From Lepidodermella squamata (lineage: Eukaryota > Animalia > Gastrotricha), in NCBI GenBank assembly GCA_047495785.1, contig JBLDXI010000073.1, positions 248,001 to 312,000 of the forward strand: DNA of 64,000 bases, in the 5' to 3' direction. Below the pieces are notes generated by a model. That model was not told the origin of the DNA. It ran no database searches and worked only from the letters and a program-made list of their open reading frames with translations. Below are positions 1 to 49,967 of this stretch, piece by piece (the first letter of the stretch is position 1; each line of letters begins with the position of its first letter). A program made the position numbers and the translations under genes.

Positions 1-968
1 CAGTTGATTCGGATTTGTCGCTCCGAAAAATACGCGAACATTATTCTGAGTTCCCGTTTTCGCAAATGACGCGACTAATGCGAGCAAAGTTGTCGGTACA
101 TGGATCCTATTAATACTGGCTATTAAGATTCGAAAAACGTAGGGCAGAACCGAAATGCAAGGCAGCACACGGACTCCGTTTGAAATAATTCAGGGCAATG
201 CCTTAAAATTCCTAAAATACGGTAATTATCATTAACTGACGGGTCCCGTGTCAGAACTCGAAACTATGGTAGTACTACAGCTGAAATTTAGTATTGTACA
301 AAGCTTGCCGGTAAAAATCCCGTTCTGAAAAATACTTCTTGATAGAATAATATACACCTTGGTGAAGCAATAACATATATTATTCAACAAACAACAAGCT
401 ATAGGGCTGTCCATTGACGTCGAGTAGCGCCGCTTTCTAATTTGTACTTGCACTTGTAACTTTCCACCACCAAACATGTGTAAACAAGGTTGAATTCGAG
501 TTTTCATCTCAAAAGTCTCAAAGTGTGTCCAGGGTGCGATCTTGGATCCCGGAGCTGCCAGGGATGGAAAAAAATGTTTTCCTGCATTTGCCAAAATTAC
601 TAGTTATTTTGGCGAATGACCGAGCGAAGCGAGAAAATTTTGAAGATTTTCCACTAAAACACGCTCCAGACCCTTTCAAAATTGACGAAATAAGGGGATA
701 AACTCTCGTTTTGTCGTCTGGCCCAGCTGAGCTGGGGGGGGGGGGGGGGGGGGGGGGTGGGGGGGGATGATCCCCGCCATCAAACAGCCCCCCCCCCCAT
801 CATCAGACAGTGGGTGAAAGTCGCACACTGAGTGTGTCAATTCTCAATCATCCAAGTCCACGTGGTCACGTAGCATGAATAGTTAGAGGCGTTGTTTGTT
901 TTCGTTGCTTCGTCGTTTTGTCATTTCGTCATCTCATATAAAAAACTGACGGAAGAAAAAAGTGGGGT

Positions 969-1038
969 AAAAGGAGGATTCGAACCCGGGACCTTCAGCA
1001 TTAGAACTGCGGACTTGAGCCACTATACTATAGGAGCC
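969..1038 (-). ncRNA. tRNA-derived (SINE-head-like) Pol III unit, not a canonical tRNA
   Basis: Minus strand: A-box-like TAGTATAGTGG, B-box GGTTCGAATCC, then TTTT. No convincing acceptor stem. Confidence 0.5.
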
Positions 1039-1124
1039 TTCCTATCTGCGTCTGGCTAAAAGCGCTTATCTGTAGCGTTCGTTAAGTATATAAAAATGCC
1101 GGAAGAGAATGACTACCGTGACCC

Positions 1125-1193
1125 AGCACTATTGCTCAGTGGTCTCGCCTTATTGGTCAATTCCCAGTGGTCCTGGGTTCGAATCCTCCTTTT
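1125..1193 (+). ncRNA. tRNA-derived (SINE-head-like) Pol III unit, not a canonical tRNA
   Basis: A-box-like TTGCTCAGTGG, B-box GGTTCGAATCC, then TTTT; divergent partner of 969-1038. Confidence 0.5.
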
Positions 1194-2242
1194 ACCCCAC
1201 TTTTTTTCTTCCGTCAGTTTTTTCGTATTTCGTATGAGATGACGAAGTGACGAAACGATGAAGCAACGAAAAAAACAACGCCTCAGAGCTAACTAACTAT
1301 TCATGACACGTGACCACGTTGACTTTGATCCTGCAATACGAAGCATAATGGGGAAACGCTCTGCGAACGAGTGGGTTCTGAATGAGAGGGGATTACGCCG
1401 ACGTGTCTCGCGACGCATGATAAAGATGAAAATTGATAAAGAAGAAAATATTGCTGGCGATGAAATAAATGGGTGATGGCTAACTAACCTATGTGATGAA
1501 TTCGTTTTTCTGAATCTCCGAAAAGGCAGGACTTGCGCACAGGACAGGTACCCTGTGCGAAGTACAGGGGTGCTGGGGTGTCGCGACACCCCAGCTCCGG
1601 GACTCCAGCCAAAGGAAGGCTGAAAAAACAACACCCTTTGGTTCCTTCGTCTGGGTCCTAGAAACCAAGTGAAAAGCACCTCAGCTCCCGAATCCTACTT
1701 CGCACACTGATTAAAAGTAGGAAAATTACAATGGTTGGATAGGGCGATGAGTGAATAAAAATAAAGGTCGCGTGTCCACTTACCCAAGAGAGCCGAAATG
1801 ACATTTCTGTAACAATAAAAGCTGTTTATTATCATCATTCTTCCCTAACCGTTCAATTTTCATGTAGGCTATCTATTGTCTAGTGCAAACATATAATCAG
1901 TTTGCTCGCCTTATCTCTTGCTCGCCTTATCACCTTATCTGCCATACAGACTTATATGAGTCAAACGATTCATTTAGCTACCGAAACTTGTTATTGCTTC
2001 TCTATCTTTTTACGGATTGCATCAGCTACATTATACTGCCGTTTTGCAGGTCGAAGTTCAATGGCTAAAAATAAGTCGCGCGCCGTGAAACGCAGTGAAA
2101 TTGAAACGTTTCAATTTTCAGGGCATTAAGTCACTTCGTCATTTCGTCATTTCGTCATTTCGTAAATTTTACATCGTTTCCATTGTTTTACATCGTTGTT
2201 AATTTTGTTTTACTTTCAACTTTGCTACAATTTTTTATTCTC

Positions 2243-2790
2243 ATGGCTGCTGCTCCGGGGAAAAAGCGGAAGCTCGCTGAAGCTTCGACCAACACCCTAA
2301 CCGACACCGAATTTATGGCCGAGCTCATCAAGGCGATTGCGGAGACGCACCAACCCGAACGCAAGGTGAGCTTGCGGCAAATCTTACATACAGTAAATAC
2401 TTACGAAGGTAAGGTTTCGCGACTTTTTTGATTGCAACTAATTCATGAATTCAAATAGTCAATACTGGTAACTGGTCTCCCTTACAAGTTCAAAAGCTTC
2501 GTCACATGCATTGCTTCATGGCGATGAGCGGCAAGTCAGCAACTGCCCCCGGGTCGGCGTGGAAAGCCTGGATGTTCGAAAACCCCGAAGATGATGACGG
2601 CGTGTTCGAACGCTACGTAGGTCATAAGGAAAGGGCCATTCTGCGAAAAATCGCCGAAATTGATAGGGAAATTAGAAAAGGCTTCTTTGCCTTCGACTAC
2701 TCGACCGACGACTACGAACTGCGTTGGGAAAAAGTTGGAAGATCCTTTAAGTGGAATGTTCTCTCGAAAATACCGGAACCTGCCCGCTAG
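2243..2790 (+). CDS. Orphan 165-aa protein with N-terminal NLS-like PGKKRK (exons 2243-2408, 2459-2790)
   Basis: A 50-nt GT-AG intron (2409-2458, phase 1) joins the two ORF fragments in frame: MAAAPGKKRKLAE...TYE/VNTGNWSPLQVQKLRHMHCF...IPEPAR*. Confidence 0.65.
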
Positions 2791-3011
2791 CAAGAAATTT
2801 ATTATTGAAAATGTGACCATTTCAGCATTGTCATTTTATCAGCCGATTGTTTATTTCATGAATCTTTTAATTTCCTTAATTTTAATTTCCTGATCGACAA
2901 TTTCATCATCGATGATCATCATTTTATCAGCTAATTGTTACTGTCATTTTCTGAATCTTTTTACAGTCAATTCATCACAACATCTCACAGAATAAAGATT
3001 CTCAGGAATTA

Positions 3012-3793
3012 TCACAATGTCATTTTCACATAGAGCTTCCGGTTTTCGTTTTCCATAACTTGCCGCGCTATCGACCTGCTATTCGATGTATTGCTGGTGA
3101 CAAATCGAATATTCTCCTTATTTTTCAGCTCAGTATTCTCGGTTGACAGCGCATATAAATCGAACTCCGTGAGATATTCATAAACATGAGAACTCAGAGC
3201 ATGTGCATATGAGGTGACCTTGCCGACCGCTTCTTTCCACATCTCCGGGTAACGACTGAGTGACTAAATCAATAAAGGTTTAGTTCCAAAATTAAATTTA
3301 CAATTTACTTCGCAAATCGGCAGATATTGACCCATTTTTTTCCGGGTTGAGAAGAATGACTGCTTCGAAACGTCAGAGAAGCCCAAGTCGTCCTTCATGT
3401 CGAATACCTGTTGAGCACCGAATTTATGTTGGAAACCCAGCTTTATCAACCTTAATAATATTAAATTTTTCAAAATGCCAGAATTTTTAAGAGAACATAC
3501 GCAATCGCCCTAGCTAAAGCCGATTCTTTCTCCTTGACGGGATAATGGCTCTCTACTGTTCCGACGCCGACGTATTCAATGCGCAGAGTGACACTGGCGA
3601 TAACAGCCCCGTCCATAACTTTACCGAGATTGGTTTCATTGAGAGTTTTTATTAAAATGAGCTGATGCTTTTCCACTCGAGTCCGAACACTTCTTTTGTT
3701 CATCCCAATCACAGTCGCCGATCTGGGACGCGAACTTCTAATCTCATCATTGATCTCGGCATTATTGATGGGCACCAAATAACTCAGCGGCAT
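3012..3793 (-). CDS. Orphan 228-aa protein (exons 3793-3501, 3450-3309, 3263-3012)
   Basis: Two GT-AG introns (50 nt phase 2; 45 nt phase 0) join three ORF-track fragments into one 687-nt open frame: MPLSYLVPINN...ARAIA/LIKLGF...LPICE/SLSRYPEMWKE...KMTL*. Confidence 0.7.
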
Positions 3794-4186
3794 TACGAAA
3801 TAATGTTATCAAAACCTGAGCGGAAAATCGACGCTTCAAACCTAGCTTGCAATAAAATGCGAAATAATTTCAAAATTTCAATTGAAAACAACACTGATTT
3901 TCAAATTTTTATTTTGTTTTGTTTTGTGATGCTCATTGATAAAACTTGATTTATAACACGCTTTATTTACAACTTTAAAACAACTTTATTTATTTATAAC
4001 AAAAATCAATAAGTAGAATTTCACTACTGTGAAGAAATAAAGAATTGAAGAAATAACGAAATAACGAAATGACGAAATGACGAAATGACGGAGAAAACAA
4101 AACAAAAGCACGCGTTAACTGAAGCACTGATGTTGACGCTGTTGATCACATGGTTGAACTTTGACCTGCAAAGCGGGAGTATAATG

Positions 4187-4712
4187 TATCTCGAGTTCTT
4201 TCTCATGCTCCCACGTGAACCCAGCTTCATCACGCCCAATGTGGCCGTAGCAAGCCGTTCGTCGATAGATAGGGCGCTTCAGATCCAGGTCCCGAATGAT
4301 ACAACCAGGGCGAAGGTCGAAATTACGGCTGATAACACTTCGCAAATCATCGGCAGTCAGCTCACCTTTCGCTGAGCCATAATCGAAAACTGTCACACTC
4401 ACCGGCCCAGAACGGCCTATAGCATAGGAAACCTGAACTAGGCAACGGCGGCAAAGCCCAGCAGCAACTAGCGATTTCGCAGCCCAACGTGCGGCGTAGG
4501 CCCCAGATCGGTCGAATTTGCTGCTCGAGCAGCTCGAGCTTTACGCGGGCAAGTTTCCGGGTCGATGCCTGTCTCAGCATCGATGAGGCCAGCGCTACGA
4601 ATGACGTCACGCACCACTGCGTTGATGTTTACGCGATCAGCGCCGGTCGAGGTGAACTCGCCGAAGACGCAGACCTCATCGGACTTGGCAAGGCCGAAGG
4701 CAATATCCCCGC
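4187..4712 (-). pseudogene. MAT: S-adenosylmethionine synthetase (MAT) pseudogene, internally deleted and frameshifted; last codons displaced to 1991-2028
   Basis: Minus strand encodes DRSGAYAARWAAKSLVAAGLCRRCLVQVSYAIG...NFDLRPGCIIRDLDLKRPIYRRTACYGHIGR...FTWE (MAT C-terminal region), preceded directly by an N-terminal-domain-like piece AKSDEVCVFGEFTS...VVRDVIRSAG...GIDPETC/RVKLELLEQQ. Confidence 0.9.
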
Positions 4713-5330
4713 TTTACACGTAGAGTGGGAAAAACGAAACATTAGCAGCGGAAAGAATTTGCGACATGATGTAGATGGAATAGGATGAAAAGAAAACTTT
4801 GCTACACAAGAAAAAAAAGTGGTCCGAATTCGGGGGATGCATAATTGATCTTTACAAGCAATTCTATCATCCGAATTCATACGCCTCGGGCCTGCTAATT
4901 CGGGGGGTTAACTCTGTATGGAACCGGCCTTTGAATTCGCGATTTTGGCCTTGGCGGAACGCCAACTCACTTTGCACTCGATCTTGTCCTTCCGTGAATA
5001 ATTCTCAAACGATGCGCATATTGCGCCCATAGTCCGAAAAATTGAGGCCATTTTCCAAATAATTCATTAATATTATTGTTAACTCGATTGATAATTATGA
5101 ATTTTTCGGAAAAAGCAGAATCTTCAACTGTGGGGGTGGGTAAGGATTAATTTTCAATCTTTGCCTGCCTTCGCCCTCTTCAAAACCGGAAACGGTTTAA
5201 TGACGCGCAGTCTAGGAGAGGCTAAATAAAACTATTATTATTATATTCATTAATATTAAATTCTGTTGAAAAATCAAATTCATTTAGACATATATATTTG
5301 CTGGAAGTAGCATCTATCACGATCTGTTCC

Positions 5331-5735
5331 ATGACGATCTCTTTTCTCTCAACCTGGGCAGCACTGTTTGTCGTATTCCCAGTTCACTTCTCCACCGCCT
5401 TGGTTAAGCAATGCTACAGGTGCATTCCTAGCGAGACTATCAATTGTGGAGATCCCAAGAACTTCGAGGTTTACAACTGCCCAGCGAACATTAATTACGG
5501 GTGTCTGTACTTCGACAGTAAAATGTGAGAATTTTGTTTTCTATACATTTTTTGTCAATTTTCGCTGCGAATTGGTTTTAGAGAAGCTGGCATACGCGGC
5601 TGCATTGACGAAAGAGGTTGCATACCAAGTCGGTTCGTGCATTGCTGCTCGGAAGACCTGTGCAACAGCCAAACAACTACCCTTAAACCGACTACTGATG
5701 GTGGGCTCTCTACCGCTGTAGCTGTAGCGATGTAG
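5331..5735 (+). CDS. Ly6/uPAR three-finger protein, copy 1 (exons 5331-5524, 5582-5735); TM segment frameshifted
   Basis: Signal peptide, QCYRC...RGC...HCCSEDLCN 10-Cys domain, phase-2 intron. Stops at GLSTAVAVAM*; TM and basic-tail remnants continue out of frame to 5811. Confidence 0.75.
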
Positions 5736-6470
5736 CTGTCGGTGCATTAATGGCAGCAATGGCAGGATTAGTCGTGTGTATTTCATGAAGAAAATGCGCA
5801 GAAGAAATTAGGACATGTTAATGGGCGCGTTTCTTTATTCTAGTTTTTGTGCATTTTATCAAATAAAATCGAAATATAACAGATTTCATTGATCTGTTGA
5901 GTTTATAAAACCAGCTGGTTTTTCCATTTCATTTCTTAAGTGAATTTTAGTTTGTAATATCAAGAGAAAAACGGACGCGTTTCAGTGGAATTTTTGTTTT
6001 TTTCTTCAAAGGAGGCAACAGGGGGTAGGGGTGTTTCGACCTTATTTTTAAATGGAAAAGTGTAATGCAAAAAAATGAGTGATCGTCGTAGACTTGAAAA
6101 AATTATTAGTCATATGCATGACTTGAACGGGATGGGGTCAAGAATCGCAAAAAACCCTTGCGTTTCATGCGTAATTTTGTTTTATCAGCGGCACGCGATG
6201 TTTCAAAAACATTTTGGGTTTGAAAATTGCACGAAAACACGGATAAAGAAATAGCAATTTTTTGGGAAAATAAAATATAAAAAATCAAGTAAAGAAAGGC
6301 AAAAATTTTAATTTTTCAAAATAAATTGATAAAGAAATGTCAGGTTTTTAATTTCATTTTCTAACAGAAAATCGTCGGGAATAAAGAAACGCACCCTATA
6401 TCAGTCCTAATTTGAAATTAGGACTAATAGAAACATGGTCAAATGTAGAAAGCGCTATTATCATAGTTAA

Positions 6471-7406
6471 GGGCGATTCACAAACTCGTGTTTTCCACAT
6501 TAATGATGCAAAAGATTTTTTTCAGGCTCACTTGAATCATGAACGATGAACGAAACCCGCTCACATATTATATGTCATAATTCATGATTCAACAAGCTGT
6601 TTTGCCTTTTTTTATGTGCGCGATTTAGATCTAAAAAGGAGTGCGCCCGCAAGGCGCAGAACCCACGGCACTGGGCATGATAGTTCGAGTTAAACCCACT
6701 GTGCCACCAGTGAGCTTATGCTGATATGAGCGTTAGCGTCATTATCTCCTATTCTTGTTGTTAACTTAGGTAAATTTTCTAAGCTATTGGAAAATTCGAT
6801 TATTTTCCATAAAATCCATTCCATAAATTACATCATTTGACCTTTATCCTCGGCTAGAGCACTCTGATTGGGTCGATTAATTAGTCCAAACCGATACATT
6901 TTTCTGAAGTATGAATCATTGGGCTTAAAACTATTCGATTCAGTCATTTTTGGCGATGATTTATCGGCTATTGCTATGATTCCGAAACTTGGTGTAATGG
7001 CTAACGTTAAAGCGGGCAATGTAGTCTAAAAAATTCGAACATTTAAGCGCTAGTTTTGCAGTTCTGATACTGTAAATCAACAGCAAAAATGGAAGATGAT
7101 GACAGAAACGCTCTCAACCATCGAAGCTCGCTACTGGCATAGTGGTTTAGCTCTGACCATGCTAAACCAGAATACTGGGTTCTGTGCTCGGTGGCGGCGT
7201 CATTTTTTGGATCCATGCGAAGTCGCACACAAAAAATCGCTATTTGTATCATGAATTATGAAAAATAATTTGTGAGCGGGGTTCGTTCATAGTTCATGAT
7301 TCAAATGGCCTTGCGACCGTTTTTTTGCAAAAGATGAATTTTGCGCGTAAGAAAAGAACGATGAATCATGAATGTGTATTTTACACACGAGTTTGTGAAC
7401 CGCACT
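6471..7406. mobile_element. MITE flanked by TTAA (Kolobok-like termini)
   Basis: TTAA-GGGCGATTCACAAACTCGTG ... CACGAGTTTGTGAACCGCACT-TTAA; long imperfect inverted arms (TGAATCATGAAC...CCCGCTCACA). Confidence 0.65.
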
Positions 7407-7882
7407 TTAATAATTCATAATGATCGATTCTATACCAGCTTGCGGCTCAAACTTATGGGATTCTCCACTTTATACAGATTGGAAAGCAACGATCTTTCAA
7501 TAGTGAATAAACTTACACCGAAACGTGAAAAATGGGCACGTGACACGTGACCTTTAGTTTTATTCCCTCAGCGCCCATCTACCCATTGTAATATTTTTCG
7601 ATTTTTAACTATTTTCTAAAATTCCCAGAGAACACCGTTCTCTTCCCGCAAATTCCCAAAAACTTTTCCTGAAAACTAAGAGCGCTGCTCTATCAAATGA
7701 GTCCCATCTCATGAGACGATTCTTTTCTAACTTTTTATAAATTCTCCCAAAGTTGATCACTTTACGAAATATTTTTACAGTCTTAAGGGCGGTAAACTGC
7801 TCGAGTTGGATATTGTTGCAGACCAACTCGGATTCGCAGGTGCCTTACTGCTAGCTCTACACATACTGAAGTCTTGATGAAT

Positions 7883-8107
7883 TATACTTTGTTTTGCAGG
7901 TCAAAGGTCACACGTGCCCACGTTATCAAAACGTGTGATGAAACACACACTAAACGTCCAAAACAAAGGACGATGACAACATGACGAAATGACGAAATGA
8001 CGAAATGACGAAACGACAACGCTAGCAACAACTTGAAAAATTGGTTTGATCTCCCGCTTTGATCGCGTGGGCACGTGAGACCTTTGACCTGCAAAACAGA
8101 AGTATGA
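7883..8107. mobile_element. Short MITE of the same TIR family as 2029-4186
   Basis: TATACTTTGTTTTGCAGGTCAAAGGTC / GACCTTTGACCTGCAAAACAGAAGTATG; internal (GACGAAAT)n. Confidence 0.7.
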
Positions 8108-8667
8108 TCACCATGGAACCAAGGTCGTCTCAAACCGATTACGACCACTGCTTTACGCGAGGTATTTTAAACGTTTGTCTAGCTGTCTAGCTTTGTAAGT
8201 GATCAAACTCTAATAGAACAGAGAAATATACATCGAACGTATGGTTAGACGGCATGTTTTAAACTATTTTGGACGAGGGACGAGCGATGCCTTCGGAAAG
8301 GTCGATTCGCAATTAGCTGGCCAAAGTGCCCTTTAAACCTGGTTTGAACTATAGCTAAGGCCCTAGTTCGAGTATCCTACTTCGCGCAGTGCGGTCTTCG
8401 CAAAATCCTGTCTTCAAACTTCAGAAACAGCGACTGACTACATTGCATTGTTATTTGTTATGTAGTTGCATAGTCATCACATCAGACCCGAAACAAATCG
8501 TTCACTCTTCAAATGTAGCGCGAGTAAACAACGAACTGTTACAAAATTTAGGGATCTTTGTCAACCGGGACTTTGATAACTTCTCAAAGCTTGGCTGGAC
8601 TATCTTTAGACTTTAGACTACCTTCGATTAGCTTATAGATTTGTGTGAAATGTGCAATGCCTATATA

Positions 8668-14288: not shown

Positions 14289-16524
14289 GACTGGTTTTGT
14301 TGGAGATTGTTTTAATGAGCTGCACCGATCAACTGACGATGAATGTTGATCAGTCTGAGTCGGGAAGCCACCCACTCGCACTTTCAAGAAAAATTCTACT
14401 GAGTTCAAATAATTCTTTTAAATAAAATAAAGTATGTGTATTTCCGCATTTTTCTTTACTACAGGGCGTCCGCGAAAAAATGCGCAGCTATTTCCAGTTT
14501 TGCATGTGTTTTTTGCCGTGAGGTGAAGCTAAAATGATTATTATTTCGCGAACACACTGTAATTTAACGCCAGTCAATGCATTTATCAATGCTTACTTAT
14601 AAGCTGTAGCCCGAGAAACCACGGGGCGAGGACTCAACCTCAACGCATAAACAGATTTCAAGGCCACTTTGATTTGAGACTTTGATATAATCATTCCATT
14701 AATTGCCCGACATTCTGGGTGAGAAGAGCCGGCAATGCATCCAGGAACCCGAGCTTTTTAACGCGAGCATTTTCGATTCTATCCCTTTTAGATGATATTT
14801 GCAGAGTTGATAGGTTCTTTCGATCAGGTCGCAAGAAACTCGCGGTCGCCCCAGCAGAAATCGTAAAAAAATCATAATATTATTAAAGATGAATCATGGA
14901 TAGTAACATACATATTATTATTTTACTATTACATAACAATTCTTTTACTACTCTTCAAATTCTCATGTTATCATTATTTTTTTCTAGGATAAGTGTTCTT
15001 CAGTATTTGATGGCACGATGCGAGGCAAAAAATCCATTCAGCTTTTTACTTGTAGATAAATAGTGCTTTTTTATGTGCGCCTGTAGCCTGTTGTTGAAGG
15101 CGGAACAGCAAACTTAAACACTCGGGTAAGAATTGGACACTCCTTTCCCCGCCTGATGACAAATGAACAAGCCTAGTCGTTCCTTCTGCCGATTTGCCTA
15201 CGATATGAATTCATAATCGTCAAAAAAGGCATATGAGCCTCCATTGAGATTCTTTGAAGTTTTGTAAAAAGTGCCGCATTCAGAGGGTGTCGTAAGAGTA
15301 AAAAACGAACTTTTAGCGACTCTCGGGATCTTTGCCACCCGATCATTGAGCTTGAAAACTTGCTGAAAGCTGGATTAATCTATCTTTTGCGGCCAAGTAG
15401 GTTCGCGGAGCCAAAAACGCGCCTCTTTCACTAGCTCAGCTTCTTCTCGCTTTGATAAAGAACGTTGGCGAAGGAAAGATCAACGCAAAAAGCCTGCCAA
15501 AAAGCCATACGTTTTCAGCAGCAAACGACACGATTTGTATTCGTTCCGCACACAAATTGGGACATTTAGTCTCGAACGAGTGCCGAACGGGTCCTGGATG
15601 GGCGGGGAACAGGTGCGGGATGAGTGCGGAAGAAGTGCGGAACAGGTCCGGATTTTAGCGAGTGATCAACGCCGAATTTGGTGCAGTGGCATGATTGTCA
15701 ACTCGCTCCAACTTGATCCCAGCTCCCATCAGGTGTCTCCCTCGATAATTGCATGACCCTGAGCCCGAGCTCGAGCACTCTGTTACACTAGTCACACACT
15801 TTTTGAGCGTTATGTGTTGCTGGAGCCAATGAATCATATCTTATCTTTCAACATGTACCACATGCCCCCTTGTTCTCATGCCCAGCCCTCTTCTGCACTC
15901 ACTTTTTTCTTGTTTGCTTATCCAAATATAGGTTTACGATTACGTAATGTTGCATCAGTTTGGCTGATAGCAAGATTTCACAGCTTCTGAATCAGGAAAT
16001 TGTTATGCTGTGTGAAAATTACGATGAATATTATTGCAGGAATCGCAGCAGCGATGAATAACGCAAGACCTTCAGGTGATCCTCTCCTGACTGATCCGAG
16101 CAGCTTACTCTGGGAAACGGAGTTCTCAGAGTTCAAAATGACAATGGTTTTCGTGGGAGAATGTCATGATGGCAAGAAAAAGCCGGATCCCTGGCTGGAC
16201 AATCAGTATTCCGAATTCGATTTAGACTTCCATTTTTCCGGCATATTTCTTGTGGATAGTAAAAATGGAAAAATTAACTTCGCAGTGCCGATTCGTTGTA
16301 TCGATCGAAATAGCGATAATATTTTAGAAGCATCGCAATCAAGCGGAACAAATTCGTTTTTCACAGGAATTTACATGGCAATAATATCAGTACCAATTCT
16401 ATCAATCACAGGATGGCGTTGGTTTTCTAGCATTGCCCTTGCTCTATTGTACGGTTTAAAAATTGAATCGAATTATATCAAAGCTCGGAGCAAGCCATTT
16501 CCACTTGTTTCCTCGAAATCTACA

Positions 16525-17001
16525 ATGAACTTGGTTAAAGCTTCTTTGGCAGCACTATTTGTTGCAAGCCAAGTTCAGCTGTCAGCCGCAGCTGTTAAGC
16601 AGTGTTACCTGTGCATTCCAAGCGAGAGAATTTATTGCGGACATCCGATTAACTATGAGGTGTTTAACTGCCCTTCAAATTTCAATCATGGATGCATTTT
16701 CTTCGACAGCGAACTGTGAGCATTTGGTCATTTTATCTTGTTTTAAATTTTGAATTTCAGGGAACCCGGTATCCGTGGATGCATCGATGAGAAGGGATGC
16801 ATATCAAGTACATTTGTGCATTGCTGCACGAAAGACCTTTGCAACAACCAAACAGTTACGCCGCTTCCGACTACGAGGAAGATGGCGGCAACATTGGAAC
16901 CCAGTCTGAAAGACGCCACAACTTCTGATGCGGGGAACTCTGGTTTAGCTATCGCCGATACAATTTTGGGGGCGTTAATAGTGGCAGTGACATTGGTCTG
17001 A
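16525..17001 (+). CDS. Ly6/uPAR three-finger protein, copy 3 (exons 16525-16715, 16761-17001); stop at the end of the hydrophobic segment
   Basis: MNLVKASLAALFVASQVQLSAA signal, 10 Cys, HCCTKDLCN; ends ...NSGLAIADTILGALIVAVTLV*. Alternative in-frame ATG at 16375. Confidence 0.8.
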
Positions 17002-17695
17002 GGTGTTTTTGCATATAAGTAGATCGCGAAGGAAAAAGTAAGGAAGGAAACATCAAGCAAAATTGTTTTCGCTGGAGATTACTTCAATGACAAGAGTGAG
17101 ACTACAGATTTAACAAATCGATCAACAGACACGGAGGATAGCAAGGAGAAGGAGCGATTATTCATATCTACGCCCTTAACTAACTATTAGCTTGCAATCT
17201 AATTATTGCTTGCAATTATTTTGTTTCCATTCTGATCTTCGAGGGCGATCAGTACAGTGAAAATCAAAAGTTACGCACGGTCGAGAATTTGTTGAGTTGA
17301 AACAAAAAGTATCTCACACGCGCCTAAACTATTTTTAGCTCTATGCTTGGGTTAAACCCATATGAAAATAAAAAGTGTAAATTATTGAGCCTCACTTGTC
17401 TCAATTTTAAGCTCCTTGCAGGCCTTGTTGTAAAGAGGTAAAAACCTTGTTTTTTTAGGTCTGAATTGATGTTGTTTTTAACCGGATGTTTTCAATTTAC
17501 AATCTAGTCCAAAAATTCTACGCCGAGCACTTACCAAGTTAGTCAACGTTGTCTTTGAATATTTCGCTGTAGAAGGTATCTCATCAATATTACAGCATCA
17601 ATTTAAACATGATATACGAAAAATACACTTTGAATAAAGCTGCACGTTTACGCGCACACGAAGAAGGTTTTGTTGGTTTTTCTTAAACTTACAAA

Positions 17696-20431
17696 ATGCG
17701 CCACCCATTAGCTTCAATAATCGCCTTCCTCGGGCTGATATTCAGAGTAGTGGTTTCCCAAGACGATTTCGAATGCGGTGCTTTGAACCCTACTCCTATG
17801 CCGAAAATAAAAGGCCCAGGCAGTCAGCCAGCGGGAGCACATGAGTTTCCGTGGCTGGTTTGTTTCAATTAAACATTAATTCAATTCGAAGCGAACAGGA
17901 TGTATGCCGCAGGTCCTCCTTGAGATCGAGTTCAGCGGCGATACATTACCATCAAATTGCGGAGCGTCTCTCATCTCGAAGCAGTGGCTGATAACAGCTG
18001 CTCATTGCGTTAGGGAGCCCGGAAAGACTCTTATTTCGTTAGTCTTTTAATGAATTCTCCAGTTCGATAGTCTTCGTTCTCTTTGAACAGGATCAAAGCC
18101 AAGCTAGGTCGCCATAATTTCACAGTTCGTTCAGAGGCGGCGTCTCGCGAATCCCAAGTAGCTCTGCCTGCTTTGCTCCATCCACGCTACAACGGGAGTC
18201 AAAATTTGAACGACTTTGATTTCGCTCTCTTGCGACTAGTGAGTCCAGTTCCTGAATTCACTCCGCAGATCAAACCGATATGTCTCACCTTCGCAAACAG
18301 TATGTCTCACCGCCGCACAACCAAAAACTACGCTCTCTGAGCTAGTCAGTGAACGAAGTAATGATGTTACAGTACCTGCCCCTCTCTCACCTCGAAAGGT
18401 CCAAGCAGGAAACCCCTGAAAGCCACAAGGAACACTTTGGTCAGATGAATTCGGGGATAAAAATATTCAAACGAATTCCACCTCGCTAACAGTAAATTTT
18501 GAAGGATTTTCGCTAAAACGCGATCCCAAACCCTAAAAAATCTCTCAATATCCGCGAATTGTTAAATAACCTTTAGCTATAGCCCAAGTGCTTTCTCGTG
18601 TTTCAGCTAAACTATCTGAGATCCCGAGAAAGCTGGATCTCCAGGTACGATCGTACCGGAATTGCTCGCTTGAGTATTCCCGCAGGAGCTCGGATCCGGT
18701 CACTATCACTGACTCGAAGATGTGTTTCGCTGCCGATAAAAGCGACGTTTGCTATGGCGATTCTGGGGGCCCTCTCATGTGTATGAAATCGAGACAGACT
18801 TACCTGCTTGGCGTAATTTCTAATGGCGATGATACATGTAACGGATACTTTCCTGGCCTCTACAGCAGGGTCTGCAAGGTTCTTGATTGGATTTCGGGAA
18901 AAACAGCAGATAATCGCAGCCAGACGGGTACACCAGAGCATTCCTGTCCTGTGCTAAGCATATCGGCGGGAATTGTGACTCGTGTGGATCCGGAGGACAA
19001 TGGCGAAGTTCTAGGGCCTGGGACTGCAGTGGAAAGAGGAGCTGTTAGCGTTAAGTGCAACCCCGGTTACACCTATTCATCCTGCACATTTACGGATCCG
19101 CGGTGGTTTCCTCCGGCCACTAAAACGCCGTGAAAGGCAATTTTTCTCTAACAATTATTTGATTGCACGCTTTTGGTCAATTCAAAAATGAACGCAGGAG
19201 TCGCATTAATGATTCGAGGAAATGCTGTCATAACGTGTCAAACTAACGCTACCTGGTCCCAGCCTGGTTTTTGCGTCCCCAGGCAGCGAAGACCTGTAAG
19301 TTGACAATGAAGATCAGCAAAGTCGAATGTCATTACATTAATACTTGAGTTGAATGGTGAGCGATGCAAAAAGCCGAGTAAGCGTCGCAAATTTTGAGTA
19401 GCAAACTTTAGACTATGCTAGTATAAACCGGACATGTACAGCCCGAGTAAATTGTAGGGCCGAGTATCCGTGTCGCCGATCTATAAAAAGCTCGCATGAG
19501 TTGCATAAGTTGCATGAATCTCAACTCGCTTATGTATGCCTGTTCTGGCGTTTAGGTCCGTGAAGTGTACGAGCAGTTGTGGAATGTAACAGCCTCTACG
19601 GCCGACCTGGCGCAGGTGCGGCAACTCGTTGCGGAGATCGACGAATCCACTGGCGGCAAGTTTGACCCGAACTGGCGCCACCAAAACAAGTATGACTGCG
19701 GTGGTTGGGATGTGGTGAATGGCACCCTGCTTCACAGCGTCACGTGCAATCGGACGCAATCAGACCAACGACTGCAAATTGCTCAGCTGCTCGTAAATCG
19801 TGGAACTGACGTGAATTCCACGGAGAATAGCAATGGCTTAACGGCGTTGATGTATGCAGCTAGGAATGGGCACGTCGAGGTGGTTCGACTTTTGCTGGAT
19901 AGCAACGCTGCAATCGACGCCAAGACTACCTTTGGCAGTACAGCGTTGAATCTTGCTGCTGGGGAAGGGCACGTTGAGGTTGTTCGAGTGTTGCTAGATC
20001 ACAACGCTGCCATCGAGGCCAAGGATAACGATGGCGCAACGGCGTTAGCGAATGCGGCTTGGAGAGGGCAAGCTGACGTGGTTCGACTGTTGCTGGATCG
20101 CAACGCCGCCATCGAGTCAACAGTAAACGCTGGCTGGACGCCGGTTATGTTGGCGGCTGGATCTGGGCAACCCGACGTTGTTGAACTTTTGCTGGATCGC
20201 AAAGCTGACATCGAGGCTAAGAATGCCTACAATGGCTGGACGCCGTTAATGCACGCGGCCTCGATTGGACAGCTGGGAGTAGTTGCGCAGTTGCTGGATA
20301 GAGGGGCAAATAAAGATGCTAGAAGTTCAGACGGCAAGACAGCTCTCGATATTGCAATTTGCTGGAATAAAACCGCGGCGGCCGACTTGCTGAGGTCGCG
20401 AGGAGCAAGTAGAGCAAAGGCATCGTGTTAA
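17696..20431 (+). pseudogene. Serine protease-sushi-ankyrin gene, copy A (probably damaged)
   Basis: Exons 17696-17857, 17913-18037, 18091-18299, 18607-~19080, ~19211-19295, 19556-20431 parallel copy B. TAAHC/DFALL/GDSGG present, but a ~29-aa in-frame deletion removes the GWG region and the sushi1/sushi2 junction is replaced by unrelated sequence with a stop at 19133. The ankyrin exon is intact. Confidence 0.8.
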
Positions 20432-34016: not shown

Positions 34017-35763
34017 CACCTTTTTTCAATTGCAATTGCGGAAAATTCAAAACAGTTTGCAGGCACGTGGTTTATGTGTGACGGTTGTTTATCTGAAAAT
34101 TTAAATTTAAATCACGTGCTCACGCCACCATTTCGTGTCATGTTTTGAGGCCAGAGACAACTCTTTCATGAACTTTCGAGAAAAGAAGAACGAAAAATGC
34201 TCTCAATATTCATCTTCATTCAATCATTCATGAAAAAAATTTATTTCCGAAATTTCTACAAAATTTTTGTTCAAAAAAATTATTCTCAAATTAATGCCTT
34301 ACAACAGAACATCAAACGTAGATCGGTTAAGGTTGATACGGGCTTTCAATGACGGTACTGATTACGTTAATTTCGGTAGGATGCTCGGCATCAAAGAGCG
34401 AACGATTTATAACATCATAAGTACTTATAGAGAAGAAAATCGCTCGGAAAGTTTGCATCGAGGGGGGCGACCAAAGGCTTGGCGGGAGGATTTTACCCAT
34501 TTCGTTATTGAGAGGCTTGAGGACAATAGCCAGCTTACCCTGGAACAAATTCAGACAATGCTGCTTGTCGAGTTCGGCGCTGGCCTCTCCATTTCCACTA
34601 TCCATCGTCACCTTGAGTATATCGGCTTTACTGTTAAGAAGGTCTACGCTTGTCCAGCGGATAGAAATCGACCTGATGTCATAGCCCTAAGAATTGTTTA
34701 CGCGAATTGGTTCAACGGGTTTCGTCTGCATAACAGGTATTACTATCAGGACGAGTTCGGGGTCTGCCTTTGGACTCGTCGATCTTGTGGCCGAGCTCGT
34801 CGTGGTCAGCGGGCTGTTGTGCAAAATCCGATGTCCCATGGTGGCAAAAATGTGTCTGTTTCGGTCGTCGTTTCGAGGCATGAGGGGTTGGTCTATTATC
34901 GATTGTACGATGAAGGTATGAAAAACAACATGTTTCGTGAGTTTATGCTCCAGGTATGAGCGGAAAAATTCATCAAATTGACGATTTTTCTGAAAAATTT
35001 GATTTATAGGCGTCAGCAGTGGTTGGCGTTAATAACCCGGCGACTTTCATCATCGACAATTGCCGCTCTCACAATGGCGCCGTCGGTGAACTGCCGCAAG
35101 GCCATACCATACACTTTTTACCGCCGTACTCACCATTTCTAAACCCAATAGAAAATGTTTTCTCTGCTGTCAAGTCTGGCATCAAAAGAGAAATTGCGGC
35201 GAGACGTGTCGAGCTGTTTGAGCTTCTAGCCGCTGCCCGAGAACTTGGTCAACCGATGACGCCAATTTGTCGAAACTTTCTGCACGAAATTGTCGAGCGT
35301 AATCTTCGATCGATCGTTACTCCGGCATTGGTGCGAGCCTGTGACGATCATGTACTGAATTATCTTCCAGCTTGTGCTGCTGGGCAACCGATTATTTATT
35401 AAGAAATTTTTGCAGGAAAAATTGAAGAACCGAAAAAAGATGAATGAAATAAAAGAAACGTTTAATCGCGTGCTTCGCTTTATTGCTCGGTGGTTCCGAG
35501 ACCGAGGCTGATCTTTCTAAAGTGGCCCCACGCTTTCGGCCACTACGATTTCGATTCGGCGACGGATCGGTTGAACTTGACATTTTTATTTGCTTTTCTC
35601 ACGAAGAATTTGAAGAAACTGAAGGGCTGGACAGACATTTAAACTAGTGCAATGCTATTAATAAATGAGTTCAATCCTAGCCAAGATGATACAAGCAAAT
35701 AAACAAAAAGCACGCGATTGCAATTAGTTTTGAATTTTCTGCAATTGCAAATGAAAAAATGTG
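34017..35763 (+). mobile_element. Tc1/IS630-superfamily DNA transposon, apparently full length
   Basis: 37-bp TIRs CACCTTTTTTCAATTGCAATTGCGGAAAATTCAAAAC (3 mismatches) with TA flanks. Confidence 0.92.
34294..35402 (+). CDS. Tc1/IS630-type DDE transposase, 350 aa (exons 34294-34953, 35010-35402)
   Basis: HTH with GGRPK, YQDEFG, IIDNCRSH, LPPYSPFLNPIENVF; a 56-nt phase-0 GT-AG intron joins the two ORFs with no stop. Confidence 0.88.
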
Positions 35764-35848: not shown

Positions 35849-38231
35849 ATGCTGTCTTGCTTTGCATTTGCTCTTTTGGATGCTTATAAAATTCAGTCGA
35901 GTTCAAAAGCTTTGAGAATCAGAGCTCCACGAGGATCCTCGAAATTTGCAGTCAATGCTTCCCTAGCTGTACTGCTGATTGCAAGCCATGTTCAGCTTTC
36001 AGTGGCAGTTGTTAAGCAATGTTACCTGTGCATTCCAAGCAAGACTAATTGGCAACAGCAGCAGCATAGCTGCTACAGTAGCGCCGGGGGAACCCACTTG
36101 ACACCTTTCTTTGAATTCCTAAATCCTAAACCTTTAACAGTGTATTGTTTACACGTGGATAAAATTGTTTTTTATGAGTCGTAAGACGAGTAAACTCAAC
36201 AAAAAACTTCGAGTTACGTGTTACTTCCTTAGCTGTTAGTTTCTTGTCGTATAACGAGATCGATAATACTTGATGAGTCAACCCTACACTTTTGTTGTTC
36301 AGAGGTAACTATGGCCTTGGATCAATCCTAATTCCGGATTTGGCTCGATCCAAGCAAAGGTGTCTTCGTCGACGATTTCCTCCACGCGCGTGGAAGTTAA
36401 ACCTAAATTTCCATCATTTCAAATCAACAGCGGCGACGTTGTTCAGGATTTGTTTCACACAAAAGTTTAGGCCTATAGTCATACCGCACTAAAAGTAACA
36501 GTTGCTTCCGATCACTGAGTAAGAGCGAACTCCATCAAAACGAGCGAACATATGAAAAATCGTTCGAAAGCCACATCCTATCACCTGTTGCCATTCTGCC
36601 ATCCGAAAACATCGAAACACCTGATGCTCGCTTACGCTTAAGGAATCGGCAACGCCTGGTAGACGGCGTCGCCTTCAGCGCCCTCAGGATTGTAGGCAAT
36701 GAGGTTGCGCAGGGCAGTTCGTTCAGAAACCGCGGGCTTCCATGCTCCGGAGTCCACGGGTTTTCCGGAGGCTCTGGAGTTTTGGAACAACCATGTAGCA
36801 AGGAAACAAGCCGAATTCTACGCGCCGAATTGCGGCTCCGACTGTCGATAGCCTCATTTGTTGGGATCGAGTCTAATTCGGACCACAAAATTGTATCGTC
36901 GACAACAGACCATCGAAGCACATCGTTTCTGAACGAGCTGCCCTGTACGTAATACAAAGTTTGCCGCAGTTGAACTAGAAGGCACTTTTATTGAGTTTAC
37001 TCGTCTAACCACTCATAAATAACAATTTTATCCACGTAACAGTGTAAACAATACACTGTTTGAATTCAGAGAAAGATGTCAAATTGGTTCTCCCGGCGCT
37101 ACTGTTGCTGCTGTTGCCAATCAGTCGAACCGTGCCGCAGACGAAATCCGAAATATAACCCACGTCCGACGTCGCTTTACTGACTTATATGTCCTGAAAG
37201 GCAGTGCTGATTCACCGAAATAGCCCGACTATGACGTACAGGCGATTGCGGAAAACAAGATCCTTCAAAATTTGCATTATATACGTGCGGGGCAGTAGCT
37301 CGATCGAAACCGTGTGCTTCGATGCTCCGGAGATTTCCACTTTCGTGGCTCTGAGACCACTCATACGGCAGCAGCAACGCAACAAGCCGACTTCCACGCG
37401 TCAACTTTCGGCCACGACTGTCGAGGAAAACACCGTTAAAGCCTCATTGACTAGGACCGAGTCTAATGCATCTTCCGGCGACACCATGGTTGCCTCAGCA
37501 ACGAAAGTGGAAATCGTTGACTCCGGAGCATCGAAGCACACGGTTTCGAACGAGCTACTGCCCCTTATGGTGCGTCCAAAAACTAACTTCGGAGAGGGTG
37601 ACTTCGGAGACCGAACTTTAAACTTCGGAACACTCAAGCGAAACTTCGGTGACGTTATCAGTGGCAATTTCCGCGCGCGCGCGGCATGAGACGGCATGAA
37701 AATTGCATTGTGTATGCGTGTACGCGTGTACGTAGGCGTGTACACGCATTGCACATGTGCGCATACAAACAAACAAACAAACAAAGAAACAAAGAAACAA
37801 AGATGTCCACGACACGAACGGCGACAGTACGGGGGTTCCCCCGGCATTATTGCGGAGATGCGAAAAACTACGAGGTGTTCAACTGCCCTTCAAATTACAA
37901 TCACGGGTGTATCTTCTTCGACAGTGAACTGTGAGCACTTCATGTATTTATTTGTATTTGATGGTTATTTATTTTTTATTTCAGGGAACCCGGGATACGC
38001 GGTTGCATCGATGAAACCGGTTGCATATCTAGTTCATTCGTGCATTGCTGCACGGAGGACCTGTGCAACAACCAAACAGTAACGCCACTACCAAATACAA
38101 GGATGACGGCGGATAATGCTAATCCATTGGAACCCAGTCTTCAAGATCCAAAACCTTCTGATGAGGGGCTCTCTAGCATTGCAATCGGCGTTCGCTCAAA
38201 ACGAAATTACTTGGTGATCGGAAGCAGCTGA
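35849..38231 (+). pseudogene. Ly6/uPAR copy 4, split by a 1.8-kb insertion and truncated before the TM
   Basis: ...VKQCYLCIPSKT at ~36047 resumes as YCGDAKNYEVFNC at ~37847; intron 37931-37984; similarity to copy 2 ends at GLSSIAIGV (~38192). Confidence 0.85.
36048..37846. mobile_element. Composite insertion of inverted-repeat elements in Ly6 copy 4
   Basis: Arms 36048-~36215 / ~36975-37121 (ATTGGCAACAGCAGCA...); second IR ~37289-37356 / ~37495-37564; AACTTCGG and AAAC short repeats. Confidence 0.65.
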
Positions 38232-39415
38232 AGCTTTCCGTCTAGTATGACTATGGAAATGAAAGTGAATCAAGTCTCAAACAACGTCGCCGCTGTTGGT
38301 GATGCAAATGATGCAAATTTAAGGCTGACTTCCGCGCGTCAAGTGCGTCGAAAAAAACGCCGACGAAGTCTCATTTTTCGAACTAGGGACCCTTCTCCCA
38401 TCGACGACGGCGCCATAGTTTCCTCAGAACGTCGACTCGTCAAGCTGATTGTCGACTAACAACTAACTGATAAAGATAATGTTTTGAAATTTATGCGCGA
38501 AAATTCATCATCTCTAAAGGATGCTAGCGATGCGTAAAACCTCTACTTGCGATTCTTTTTTTTCCTATAATTTTCAGCCAACATTGAAGAAGGCTCGTCT
38601 ACTGGTTAGCAATCGTCAATAGTTCTGTTAAGTAGTCCAAATGGTCAATTAAAAGATCCAACGGGGAAAGTGGATTTTACGATTCTTCATTTTTCGATTT
38701 GAATCAATTCCGCAGAGAAACGACTGGTTGGATTTGGATTTCTGGCATTCAGCTAACTTCACTCGAACATCAATTTTGCTTGTGGATAGGCGTTCATTCT
38801 TGCGCATTCTTGCGTTGTTTGAGGATTGAATCCTCTATAGGTTCAGGATTGAATCCTCGGTGGTTTTACTTTGTTTTTCCCGACGGAATTCTTGAAACTT
38901 TAGAAAATCAGGACGAAATAATCTGTTCCAAGTTCAATCTCGTTATCAAAATTCAGCTCTTGATGAGAAGAATCTACTTTCCCGAATAACGTCTTCGACT
39001 TTCTTCGAAGCCGGGTTATCTTGAATACGAAAACTGTTATCCTAATTTGTGGGCTACATGCAACATAGAAAAAAATGCTCTTGATAAGACAAGTCCTATC
39101 TTGTTGTTCATACCTTTTTACCAACATGGAAAAAAATCCCAATTGATAAGACACCTATTTTATGGCACTTTGTAATCTGGCTATTAATAGCTAAGAAATC
39201 GGCAATTTGAATTTTGAATGGTTGTTTTTTTCCCTCTAAGAAGTGATGAATCATCAAACCATCTGGCACCCGTGACGATAAACTCCCTTTCGCGTGCAAT
39301 TATTCTATACTTATTTTATGTCTGTGACATAATCTCATAACTTGAGGGGTAATTCAATATCATGCCTACAATACTTGGATTATTGCCCTCGAAAACATCA
39401 CTTACTATCTGATTT

Positions 39416-39721
39416 ATGAAAATTCGGAATCACTGGATTGTGGCCGTGGCAGCACTGGTAGTTGCATGCATAGTTCAGTTTTCTAATGCCTCGGCTGAGC
39501 AATGCTTCAAGTGCATTCCAAGCGAGACCCCATTCCAATTGCGAAGATCCCAACAACTGCGAGGTATTCCACTGCCCATCGGATTACAATTATGCATGCA
39601 TTTACTTCGACAGCGAACTGTGAGTACTTAATGTTTTTATTCACTTATCACCTTTGTGATTCGCTTTGCTTTTTAGGGAAGCTGGTTCACGTGGTTGCAT
39701 GGATACCAGTAGTTGCAGAAC
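39416..39721 (+). pseudogene. Ly6/uPAR copy 5, frameshifted and truncated by a LINE
   Basis: Signal + EQCFKCIPSET, frameshift, then CEDPNNCEVFHCPSDYNYACIYFDSEL, intron 39620-39676, EAGSRGCMDTSSC, then LINE 5' sequence. Confidence 0.8.
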
Positions 39722-49661: not shown

Positions 49662-49967
49662 ATGAAAATTCGGAATCACTGGATTGTGGCCGTGGCAGCA
49701 CTGGTAGTTGCATGCATAGTTCAGTTTTCTAATGCCTCGGCTGAGCAATGCTTCAAGTGCATTCCAAGCGAGACCCCATTCCAATTGCGAAGATCCCAAC
49801 AACTGCGAGGTATTCCACTGCCCATCGGATTACAATTATGCATGCATTTACTTCGACAGCGAACTGTGAGTACTTAATGTTTTTATTCACTTATCACCTT
49901 TGTGATTCGCTTTGCTTTTTAGGGAAGCTGGTTCACGTGGTTGCATGGATACCAGTAGTTGCAGAAC
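49662..49967 (+). pseudogene. Duplicate of Ly6/uPAR copy 5 pseudogene
   Basis: Same sequence as 39416-39721 at +10246. Confidence 0.8.

Follow-up and report, generated by a model that had tools for sequence, protein, structure and literature searches.

What is a cut-and-paste transposon that encodes no transposase and apparently carries two complete genes, and how does it move? The question is raised by an element of 2,158 bp at 2029-4186 of the window, the stretch of 64,000 nucleotides of Lepidodermella squamata DNA analysed here. DNA transposons that lack an enzyme are usually non-coding, as are MITEs, or contain broken or captured genes. The element described here has terminal inverted repeats (TIRs), is present in many copies, apparently carries two complete intron-containing genes, and expresses at least one of them from its own end. 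We conclude that it is a real transposon without a transposase of its own, and an unusual representative of an already known type.

Results

Ends, insertion site and copy number of the element

A preliminary description of this DNA had proposed TA-flanked TIRs of ~33 bp, and an inverted-repeat search confirms them. The repeat spans 38 nt (2024-2061 / 4154-4191, 89% complementary) and contains a 33-nt core, in which 2029-2061 and the reverse complement of 4154-4186 are 91% identical, with a TA on both sides. The 33-bp inverted ends begin CATTATAC... and the termini of the element read CAT...ATG. A pattern made from the TIR core has four matches in the window against 0.12 expected, these being both ends of the element and both ends of a short element at 7883-8107. 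Inside the ends lie two arrays of the octamer GTCATTTC, inverted relative to each other, and this tandem octamer pattern is matched 14 times in the window against 0.02 expected. The features of the element and its surroundings are collected in Table 1.

Table 1. Features of the 2029-4186 element, its target and its short relatives (window positions)
Feature	Position	Strand	Basis or remark
TA target duplication, left copy	2027..2028	.	read from sequence; single TA at empty paralogous site
Left TIR	2029..2061	+	CATTATACTGCCGTTTTGCAGGTCGAAGTTCAA
Left subterminal array, ~4 GTCATTTC octamers	2130..2164	+	101 nt from terminus
Plus-strand gene, coding exon 1, 55 codons + 1 base	2243..2408	+	ORF; X2 contig 2135-2406, 0 differences
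Plus-strand gene, intron, 50 nt, GT..AG	2409..2458	+	X2 spliced contig
Plus-strand gene, coding exon 2 with stop	2459..2790	+	ORF; X2 contig 2514-2801, 0 differences
Plus-strand gene, 3' UTR	2791..3032	+	AATAAA 2991-2996; poly(A) site 3032
Minus-strand gene, coding exon 3, 83 aa + stop	3012..3263	-	ORF; X2 contigs 3003-3259; weak DUF7833 likeness
Minus-strand gene, intron 2, 45 nt, GT..AG	3264..3308	-	predicted only; without spliced contig
Minus-strand gene, coding exon 2, 47 codons + 1 base	3309..3450	-	ORF; GC 44%; X2 depth ~0
Minus-strand gene, intron 1, 50 nt, GT..AG	3451..3500	-	predicted only
Minus-strand gene, coding exon 1, 97 codons + 2 bases	3501..3793	-	ORF; distant relative P0001
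Right subterminal octamer array, 3 perfect + 2-4 degenerate units	4047..4089	-	97 nt from terminus
Right TIR	4154..4186	-	inverted-repeat search + TIR pattern
TA target duplication, right copy	4187..4188	.	read from sequence; empty-site contig
Target: fragmentary SAM-synthetase pseudogene	4189..4740	-	S-AdoMet_synt_C, Pfam E 1.4e-13
MITE relative, 225 bp, non-coding	7883..8107	.	same TIR core; octamer array 7975-8017
Related element, ~500 bp	854..1350	.	octamer arrays 912-938 / 1241-1259, near both ends

The element is inserted in a decayed copy of a SAM-synthetase gene, 12 codons before its stop, and the last 12 codons and the stop of this pseudogene are found beyond the element at 1991-2026. 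Contigs from two runs were compared with the window: X1, a DNA run, and X2, an RNA-like run whose RNA label is a guess. One X2 contig represents a SAM-synthetase paralogue, 87% identical, which aligns to the window from 4190; upstream of this match it reads ...CTTTTTGCGGATTGCATCAGTTAG, corresponding to the left flank of the element in the window (2005-2028) with one TA. The paralogous transcript has 550 nt in place of 27 in the window. It joins both flanks over a single TA and provides an uninterrupted target for comparison.

Contig depth in X1 is 24-33 in the unique flanks, while summed depth rises to 160-770 within the element and is highest at the two ends (1,000-1,600); summed contig depth, a rough guide to copy number only, thus suggests that the element has many genomic copies. 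Many contigs over the element are 85-99% identical to the window, and the left junction is spanned by one X1 contig with zero differences. The empty paralogous site and the multi-copy depth back the earlier view of a genuine TA-flanked, transposase-less TIR transposon.

The absence of DDE, tyrosine-recombinase and HUH motifs, noted previously by inspection, also stands: Pfam finds no transposase, recombinase or HUH domain on any of the five exons at E values up to 10. Autonomy is judged by an encoded transposase, and here there is no Pfam transposase domain and, for the three exons searched, no PDB sequence match. The features of a class II TIR element are all present, namely TIRs, a TA duplication with an empty site, and repetition, the last by a rough depth measure. 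At 2,158 bp and with two genes the element falls outside the definition of a MITE (a few hundred bp, non-coding), which describes the 7883-8107 element well.

Two convergent gene models

The two genes converge and fill most of the element, as first described, with coding sequence and introns together occupying 2243-3793, or 72% of its length. Both reading frames are open only with the predicted splices, and the predicted coding sequence has 44-53% GC, compared with 28-35% in the non-coding parts of the element. The introns (50, 50 and 45 nt) belong to a small-intron genome, and their size is close to that of an intron of ~58 nt (5524-5582) in a neighbouring host gene. Two cleanly GT-AG-spliced genes had been claimed; both models fit arithmetically, giving proteins of 165 and 228 aa, and a junction was seen for the plus-strand gene only.

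For this gene, an X2 contig joins the exons exactly as predicted, passing from 2406 to 2457 and so skipping 50 nt bounded by GT..AG (cut +2); the shorter arm of this contig measures 87 nt. No such joint occurs in X1, the DNA run. Polyadenylation at 3032 is seen in the loose end of an X2 contig, where 22 A behind this position represent the poly(A) tail. The X2 contigs of the gene are 100% identical to the window, and the transcript begins within ~100 bp of the left end of the element; at its other end the gene overlaps the end of the minus-strand gene, since its 3' UTR runs to 3032 and exon 3 of the latter extends from 3012. The encoded 165-aa protein is basic, and a KKRK motif resembling a nuclear signal forms residues 7-10, encoded in exon 1.

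Random disruption of the reading frames in other copies would, according to the preliminary description, speak against the genes. The two best-supported differences in the plus-strand coding sequence, 2302 C>T and 2544 T>A, are at third codon positions and synonymous when read against the translation, and the indels listed among copies are mostly in UTRs or introns. On the other side, exon 1 has suffered a net loss of 4 nt in one lineage of copies, so that some copies are decaying.

The minus-strand gene is covered unevenly by X2, the one RNA-like run: there is no spliced contig, depth is approximately zero over exons 1-2, and exon 3 is covered.

Searches for relatives of the two proteins

Protein and fold searches used single exons as queries, which limits their sensitivity for both proteins. 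Within this scope the two proteins remain the orphans that they were first taken for, as neither matches a known family and the sole relative is one environmental fragment resembling minus-strand exon 1. Exon 3 of the same gene resembles Pfam DUF7833 with an E value of 4.8e-4 and 20.5 bits, under the gathering cut-off of 24.3, and DUF7833 / PF25200 has no mention in the searchable literature. PDB sequence searches with three exons returned nothing below E 0.17, and word-index protein searches with the minus-strand exon 1 ORF, plus-strand exon 2 and minus-strand exon 3 gave no matches. Nothing similar to either gene is found elsewhere in the 64-kb window.

An exhaustive HMMER search with minus-strand exon 1 against 1.84 billion proteins produced two matches, P0001 and P0002. 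P0001, from environmental DNA, matches with an E value of 6.6e-7 and 38-40% identity over 63-66 aa; this 90-aa ORF occurs on two metagenome contigs, each ~650 nt long, and forms a singleton cluster. P0002, a 1,286-aa ADAR-like model, was rejected because six repeated fragments inflate its score. On visual comparison the metagenome contig also resembles the remainder of exon 1 past a frameshift and then exon 2 past an intron-like gap; tblastn gave no support for this extended likeness to exons 1-2, which is a hint only. Single matches to the TIR pattern occur 22 times in metagenome contigs and were dismissed as chance, as none has the outer TIR or the octamers.

Comparison of ESM Atlas features places minus-strand exon 1 at 0.93 to bacterial hypothetical proteins and EVE-domain clusters, a possible likeness that we treat as a lead, without backing from other results. 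The same comparison for plus-strand exon 2 gave no meaningful match (best 0.80). AlphaFold models of minus-strand exon 1 (pLDDT 40.7, from a 2-row alignment) and plus-strand exon 2 (pLDDT 56.2) are too poor to use. With the latter model as query, Foldseek against the PDB, an Atlas shape search and a VIA-wide search all gave nothing above background, with a best Z of 4.7.

Related short elements and a candidate partner

Two short relatives had been reported in the window, both with similar TIRs. The 7883-8107 element does share the TIR and the octamers, with degenerate ends and without a clean TA. The octamers are also present in the 854-1350 element, in which a TIR can be recognised at the right end alone; its core is palindromic, and neither ARAGORN nor Rfam finds a tRNA there.

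Among TA elements in the window, one alone encodes a transposase: a TA-flanked Tc1/mariner element at 34017-35763, in which HTH and DDE_3 domains are recognised. It was considered as a partner and rejected, because its ends (CACCTTTTTTCAATTGCAATTGC...) are unrelated to those of the 2029-4186 element.

Discussion

Taken jointly, these results are probably best explained by a multi-copy, non-autonomous transposon that is mobilised in trans and carries accessory genes of its own. An enzyme encoded elsewhere in the genome would recognise the ends together with the octamer arrays and move the element in trans. The two convergent genes would be accessory genes belonging to the family rather than captured host genes. 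The earlier suggestion of captured cargo found no backing, as no host parent was found in the window or in protein databases; the many copies and the promoters in the element ends give the genes the appearance of belonging to the family itself. The roles first suggested for them, in anti-silencing, in mobilisation help or as a selfish pair, are guesses. The plus-strand protein would most likely be a nuclear helper or regulator that binds the element ends, and in this it would be similar to TnpA of En/Spm or to the second of the Harbinger proteins. The minus-strand protein may be a second accessory protein, or else a transposase remnant left by an internal deletion, in which case the N- and C-terminal parts of the lost transposase would be fused in it.

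This arrangement has a partial counterpart in MuDR, the autonomous Mutator element of maize, which encodes the transposase MURA, has TIRs of ~215 bp and makes a 9-bp duplication. A further likeness may lie in the second gene of MuDR, mudrB, which encodes a small helper that is particular to its family and has no known relatives. Like MuDR, the 2029-4186 element has two convergent genes, with promoters in or next to the ends and 3' ends that approach each other; unlike MuDR, it has no transposase, TIRs of 33 bp and a 2-bp TA duplication. A second comparison is with the CMC (Chapaev-Mirage-CACTA) elements, with which it shares a 2-bp duplication and subterminal arrays of short repeats. Such arrays are the binding sites of TnpA in En/Spm, and non-autonomous deletion derivatives are common among CACTA and CMC elements. 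The termini, however, are CAT...ATG rather than the defining CAC...GTG, and no CMC transposase is encoded.

A tentative alternative, which overlaps with the explanation that we favour, is that the element is an internal-deletion derivative of a longer two-gene transposon, comparable to Ds, dSpm and the KP variant of the P element. Those elements have kept their ends, have lost the catalytic part and are mobilised in trans, and may encode a truncated regulator. The plus-strand gene would then be the small helper of the parent family, and the minus-strand gene would consist of the N-terminal 145 aa of the transposase spliced to its C-terminal 83 aa, a product that might compete with the enzyme or repress it. 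Contigs from both runs speak for such a deletion: one from X1 (596 nt, depth 195) and one from X2 (468 nt) follow the window as far as 3259, beyond which each has at least 300 nt of sequence unlike the window. The break is only 4 nt away from 3263, where the acceptor of exon 3 is predicted. Contigs that share exon 3 and diverge at its boundary fit descent from a longer element by internal deletion, as does the presence of RNA-like contigs over exon 3 and their absence over exons 1-2. However, the exhaustive search with exon 1 yielded no long protein, and X1 depth is unequal between the halves of the element that hold the plus- and minus-strand genes, a difference that would not be expected after simple deletion from a single parent. 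In comparison with KP, Ds and dSpm, the descent of our element from a longer one is only suggested by the divergence of contigs at 3259.

The element is unlikely to be a large Stowaway-like, non-autonomous Tc1/mariner element moved by a resident DDE_3 transposase. The TA duplication is a hallmark of Tc1/mariner elements, the short TIRs are also shared with these and with Stowaway-like MITEs, the 225-bp relative is MITE-like, and the HTH and DDE_3 element at 34017-35763 lies in the same window. Its ends, however, are unlike those of the 2029-4186 element, which is further set apart by its subterminal octamer arrays and by its two genes with introns. Subterminal arrays of this kind are found more typically in CACTA, hAT or P-type elements. 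Nor is a 2-bp duplication exclusive to Tc1/mariner, as animal CACTA/CMC elements make one as well (PMC6004678).

We consider it improbable that host genes or gene fragments are carried passively by a MITE-like element through transduplication, as in Pack-MULEs. An enzyme-less TIR element with protein-coding content does recall Pack-MULEs, and the 7883-8107 relative indicates that these ends exist without genes. Against capture, no host parent emerged: there is nothing similar elsewhere in the window, and the word-index and exhaustive searches returned no related protein except one environmental fragment. Furthermore, both genes are complete, each has its own start near an end of the element, together they fill it, and the interior that contains them is itself multi-copy.

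It is very improbable that the element needs no conventional partner, with the two small proteins binding and cutting the ends as an unrecognised tiny transposase and the 2.2-kb element thereby being autonomous. In a milder version of this idea, the element would be a hyperparasite, equipped with its own end-binding helper and a competitor protein, that hijacks the enzyme of another family. Finally, that the reading frames arose by chance in a long non-coding MITE is scarcely credible: the missing domain matches and low-confidence fold models would agree with it, but the spliced, polyadenylated transcript contradicts it for the plus-strand gene, and the homologue of minus-strand exon 1 in another sample, the contrast between coding and non-coding composition, and the synonymous variants in the plus-strand coding sequence all argue against it.

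A plus-strand protein that binds the octamer arrays would represent a new family of transposon helpers or regulators. If the minus-strand protein is a fused transposase remnant, the element would be an animal counterpart of KP-type self-regulation. For the family as a whole, the copy at 2029-4186 defines the ends to the base and provides a target site and a transcript.

Results

The left TIR of the 2,158-bp element (2029-2061, CATTATACTGCCGTTTTGCAGGTCGAAGTTCAA) has a near-perfect inverse at 4154-4186; the pair extends over 38 nt with 89% complementarity by the repeat finder and over 33 nt with 91% by local BLAST, and TA stands immediately outside each copy (2027-2028 and 4187-4188). Four copies of a degenerate 16-nt core of the TIR are present in the 64-kb window (0.12 expected), at both ends of this element and both ends of the 225-bp element at 7883-8107, which bears out the TA-flanked termini of about 33 bp in the preliminary description. 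Matches to the subterminal octamer array number 14 in the window versus 0.02 expected. The array recurs in the 7883-8107 element and, in degenerate form, at both ends of the 854-1350 element. Two short relatives with similar TIRs had been proposed: the first carries both TIR core and octamers, while in the second, which shares the octamers, only the right end has a recognisable TIR. Within the latter, the core at 956-1206 is a palindrome whose 38-nt arms are 97% complementary and contain a tRNA T-arm-like GGTTCGAATCC motif; neither ARAGORN nor Rfam called a tRNA there.

Positions of the element's genes and arrays, of its insertion site and of a second transposon in the window
Feature	Position	Strand	Details
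Plus gene, exon 1	2243-2408	+	ATG at 2243; 55 codons plus one base
Plus gene, intron	2409-2458	+	50 nt, GTAAGG...AATAG
Plus gene, exon 2	2459-2790	+	165-aa protein
Plus gene, 3' UTR	2791-3032	+	overlaps last codons of minus gene (stop 3012-3014)
Minus gene, exons	3793-3501, 3450-3309, 3263-3012	-	228-aa protein
Minus gene, introns	between exons	-	50 and 45 nt, both GT..AG, phases match
Left octamer array	2130-2164	inverted relative to right array	tandem GTCATTTC, ~100 nt inside end
Right octamer array	4047-4089	inverted relative to left array	tandem GTCATTTC, ~100 nt inside end
SAM-synthetase pseudogene	4189-4740 and 1991-2026	-	C-terminal domain and part of N-terminal region
Tc1/mariner element	34017-35763		TA-flanked, TIRs ~45-64 nt (CACCTTTTTTCAATTGCAATTGC...)
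Tc1/mariner transposase exons	34267-34959 and 35019-35402		HTH_32/HTH_29 and DDE_3 domains

To the right of the element, the minus strand encodes a SAM synthetase C-terminal domain (Pfam S-AdoMet_synt_C, E 1.4e-13), within a fragment that has an in-frame stop ahead of its first recognisable residues. The contig of an expressed paralogue aligns from 4190 rightwards at 87% identity, and its leftward continuation (...CTTTTTGCGGATTGCATCAGTTAG) corresponds to the left flank at 2005-2028 (...CTTTTTACGGATTGCATCAGCTA); the transcript of the paralogue has 550 nt in place of 27 in the window, and some 520 nt from the middle are missing in the window copy. The insertion point lies 12 codons before the pseudogene stop, leaving the tail (IADAIRKKIEKQ) and stop on the other side of the element. 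The uninterrupted site reads CATCAG-T-TA-G-CTCGAG and the window CATCAG-C-TA-[element]-TA-T-CTCGAG; because the empty site has one TA, the 2-bp duplication is real.

This insertion is present in the DNA sequencing run X1, where one 307-nt contig spans 1752-2058 with 0 differences. Clearly, the element is repeated in the genome over its full length, together with its genes: X1 depth is 24-33 on the unique flanks, but the summed depth reaches 160-770 in the interior and 1,000-1,600 at both ends (summed contig depth being a rough guide only to copy number), and many contigs align to the element at 85-99% identity. None of the contigs appeared to be of human origin. Ends more repeated than the interior are expected if MITE-like relatives exist.

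Run X2, whose label as RNA is a guess only, behaves like RNA: depth is zero on the unique intergenic flank and high on the SAM-synthetase paralogue. One X2 contig begins within the left octamer array, at 2135, runs to 2406-2408, makes a 50-nt GT..AG skip that is exactly the predicted plus-gene intron, and continues for 87 nt. The joined form was not found in run X1 and is therefore not a processed DNA copy. An X2 contig ends at 3032 in 22 A's, 36 nt past the AATAAA at 2991-2996. The start, splice joint and A tail together establish that the plus gene is transcribed, spliced as predicted and polyadenylated, as its clean GT-AG model had suggested. Transcription proceeds from within ~100 bp of the left terminus, and this end of the element demonstrably bears a promoter. 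In the plus coding sequence, the two differences between copies that have the best support (2302 C>T and 2544 T>A) both affect third positions and are synonymous. Most listed indels among copies lie in UTRs or introns, and one lineage of copies lacks a net 4 nt of exon 1. The protein begins MAAAPGKKRKL, which we take to fit a classical K-K/R-x-K/R nuclear signal (predicted).

Support for the minus gene is weaker. Its exon 3 is covered by X2 contigs (3003-3259). Across exons 1-2 (3255-3605) X2 depth is about zero, across 3606-3956 it is low at 2-5, and no splice of this gene was seen in X2 contigs. Both proposed genes have GT-AG introns in the models, and transcripts show the splice of the plus gene only. 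The intron sizes are typical for the host, since a neighbouring host gene has an intron of ~58 nt (5524-5582). The genes are indeed convergent, their 3' ends overlapping around 3012-3032, and GC is 44-53% in the predicted coding parts versus 28-35% in the non-coding parts. Two contigs, one of X1 (596 nt, depth 195) and one of X2 (468 nt), follow the window to the left of 3259, a position 4 nt away from the predicted acceptor of exon 3, and continue past it into 310 and 301 nt, respectively, of sequence unlike the window; their orientation was verified by comparison with how the other minus-strand records behave. A more abundant, expressed variant therefore shares exon 3 and differs upstream.

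Both proteins are orphans, as first described. With single exons as queries, which limits the sensitivity of the protein searches and fold models, Pfam returned no transposase, recombinase or DNA-binding family for any exon, in agreement with the reported lack of DDE, tyrosine-recombinase and HUH motifs; its only match was sub-threshold, minus-gene exon 3 to DUF7833 (E 4.8e-4, 20.5 bits; cut-off 24.3), a family for which nothing was found in the literature. PDB sequence and word-index protein searches with the exons were blank. When 1.84 billion representatives were searched exhaustively with minus-gene exon 1, a single true relative emerged (E 6.6e-7): a 90-aa ORF present on two short environmental contigs, with 38-40% identity across 63-66 residues. 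These ENA metagenome contigs (L001 and L002, 650 and 627 nt), the sole outside relatives of this exon, share 477 identical nt before they diverge, and the frame appears shifted beyond the conserved 65 residues, so that they probably derive from a related element that has decayed in a eukaryote not yet sampled. An ADAR-like model matching exon 1 was discarded, its score being inflated by repeats, and an EVE-domain lead from the Atlas feature search was unsupported. AlphaFold models of single exons were poor (pLDDT 41 and 56), and fold searches with a single-exon model gave background level. All exons are mildly basic (pI 8.0-9.7).

The remainder of the window holds several other repeats. A very high-copy repeat at 1500-1733 has a summed X1 depth of ~15,000-18,000, compared with ~30 in unique sequence; internal skips of 49-95 nt are seen in many contigs, and part of the repeat recurs at 8365-8391. 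At 727-800, a long G run (~40 nt) and the C runs close after it together form an imperfect G/C palindrome. An inverted-repeat element at 6464-7412 (arms 6507-6603 / 7233-7329, 97 nt, 78%; outer arms 6464-6491 / 7385-7412) is probably an unrelated non-autonomous transposon, and 36043-37126 (~1.08 kb) is a foldback-like element in which several inverted-repeat arms are nested (24-52 nt, 86-100% complementary). At 38058-48305 / 48304-58553, a 10.25-kb segment is duplicated in tandem (99.98% identity); each copy contains a 58% GC non-LTR retrotransposon with endonuclease (Exo_endo_phos_2) and reverse transcriptase (RVT_1), and small indels between the copies alter ORF lengths (412 vs 486 aa).

Discussion

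The original observation is borne out and gains strength from three findings: the empty site, the spliced transcript and the poly(A) site. What is shown is a non-autonomous, multi-copy TIR element with a TA duplication. Its superfamily can be framed by comparison. A TA duplication points to Tc1/mariner, which the element resembles in this respect but not in its subterminal octamer arrays; ISL2EU elements also have a 2-bp duplication, and arrays of subterminal repeats are less characteristic of Tc1/mariner than of CACTA, hAT and P-type elements. Duplications of 2 bp are found in CMC elements (Mirage/animal CACTA) as well (PMC6004678). The window's own Tc1/mariner element, whose transposase at first sight looks intact, was rejected as a partner because its ends are unlike those of the studied element.

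We envisage that a transposase acting in trans would bind the 33-bp ends, and that the same enzyme or a helper may bind the octamer arrays. The plus protein would be a nuclear accessory factor of the family, perhaps an end-binding helper or regulator, comparable in this putative role to En/Spm TnpA, MuDR MURB and the Harbinger Myb-like protein. The minus protein may be another such factor, or else a transposase remnant, fused and perhaps competing for the ends.

An origin of the element as an internal-deletion derivative of a longer one that lost its catalytic core is plausible, though less likely than not; X1 and X2 contigs that share exon 3 and then part from the window past 3259 are the pattern expected of such a derivative. 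The interpretation first put forward is thus supported in part, for an element that lacks a transposase and has two orphan genes; the 'cargo' label and the proposed functions are unproven, and this mundane origin may apply. Gene capture as the source of the two genes appears improbable, chance ORFs are very unlikely, and a new kind of minimal transposase, for which there is no positive support, merits hardly any credence. Overall, the element is a non-autonomous DNA transposon that has retained two orphan genes specific to its family.
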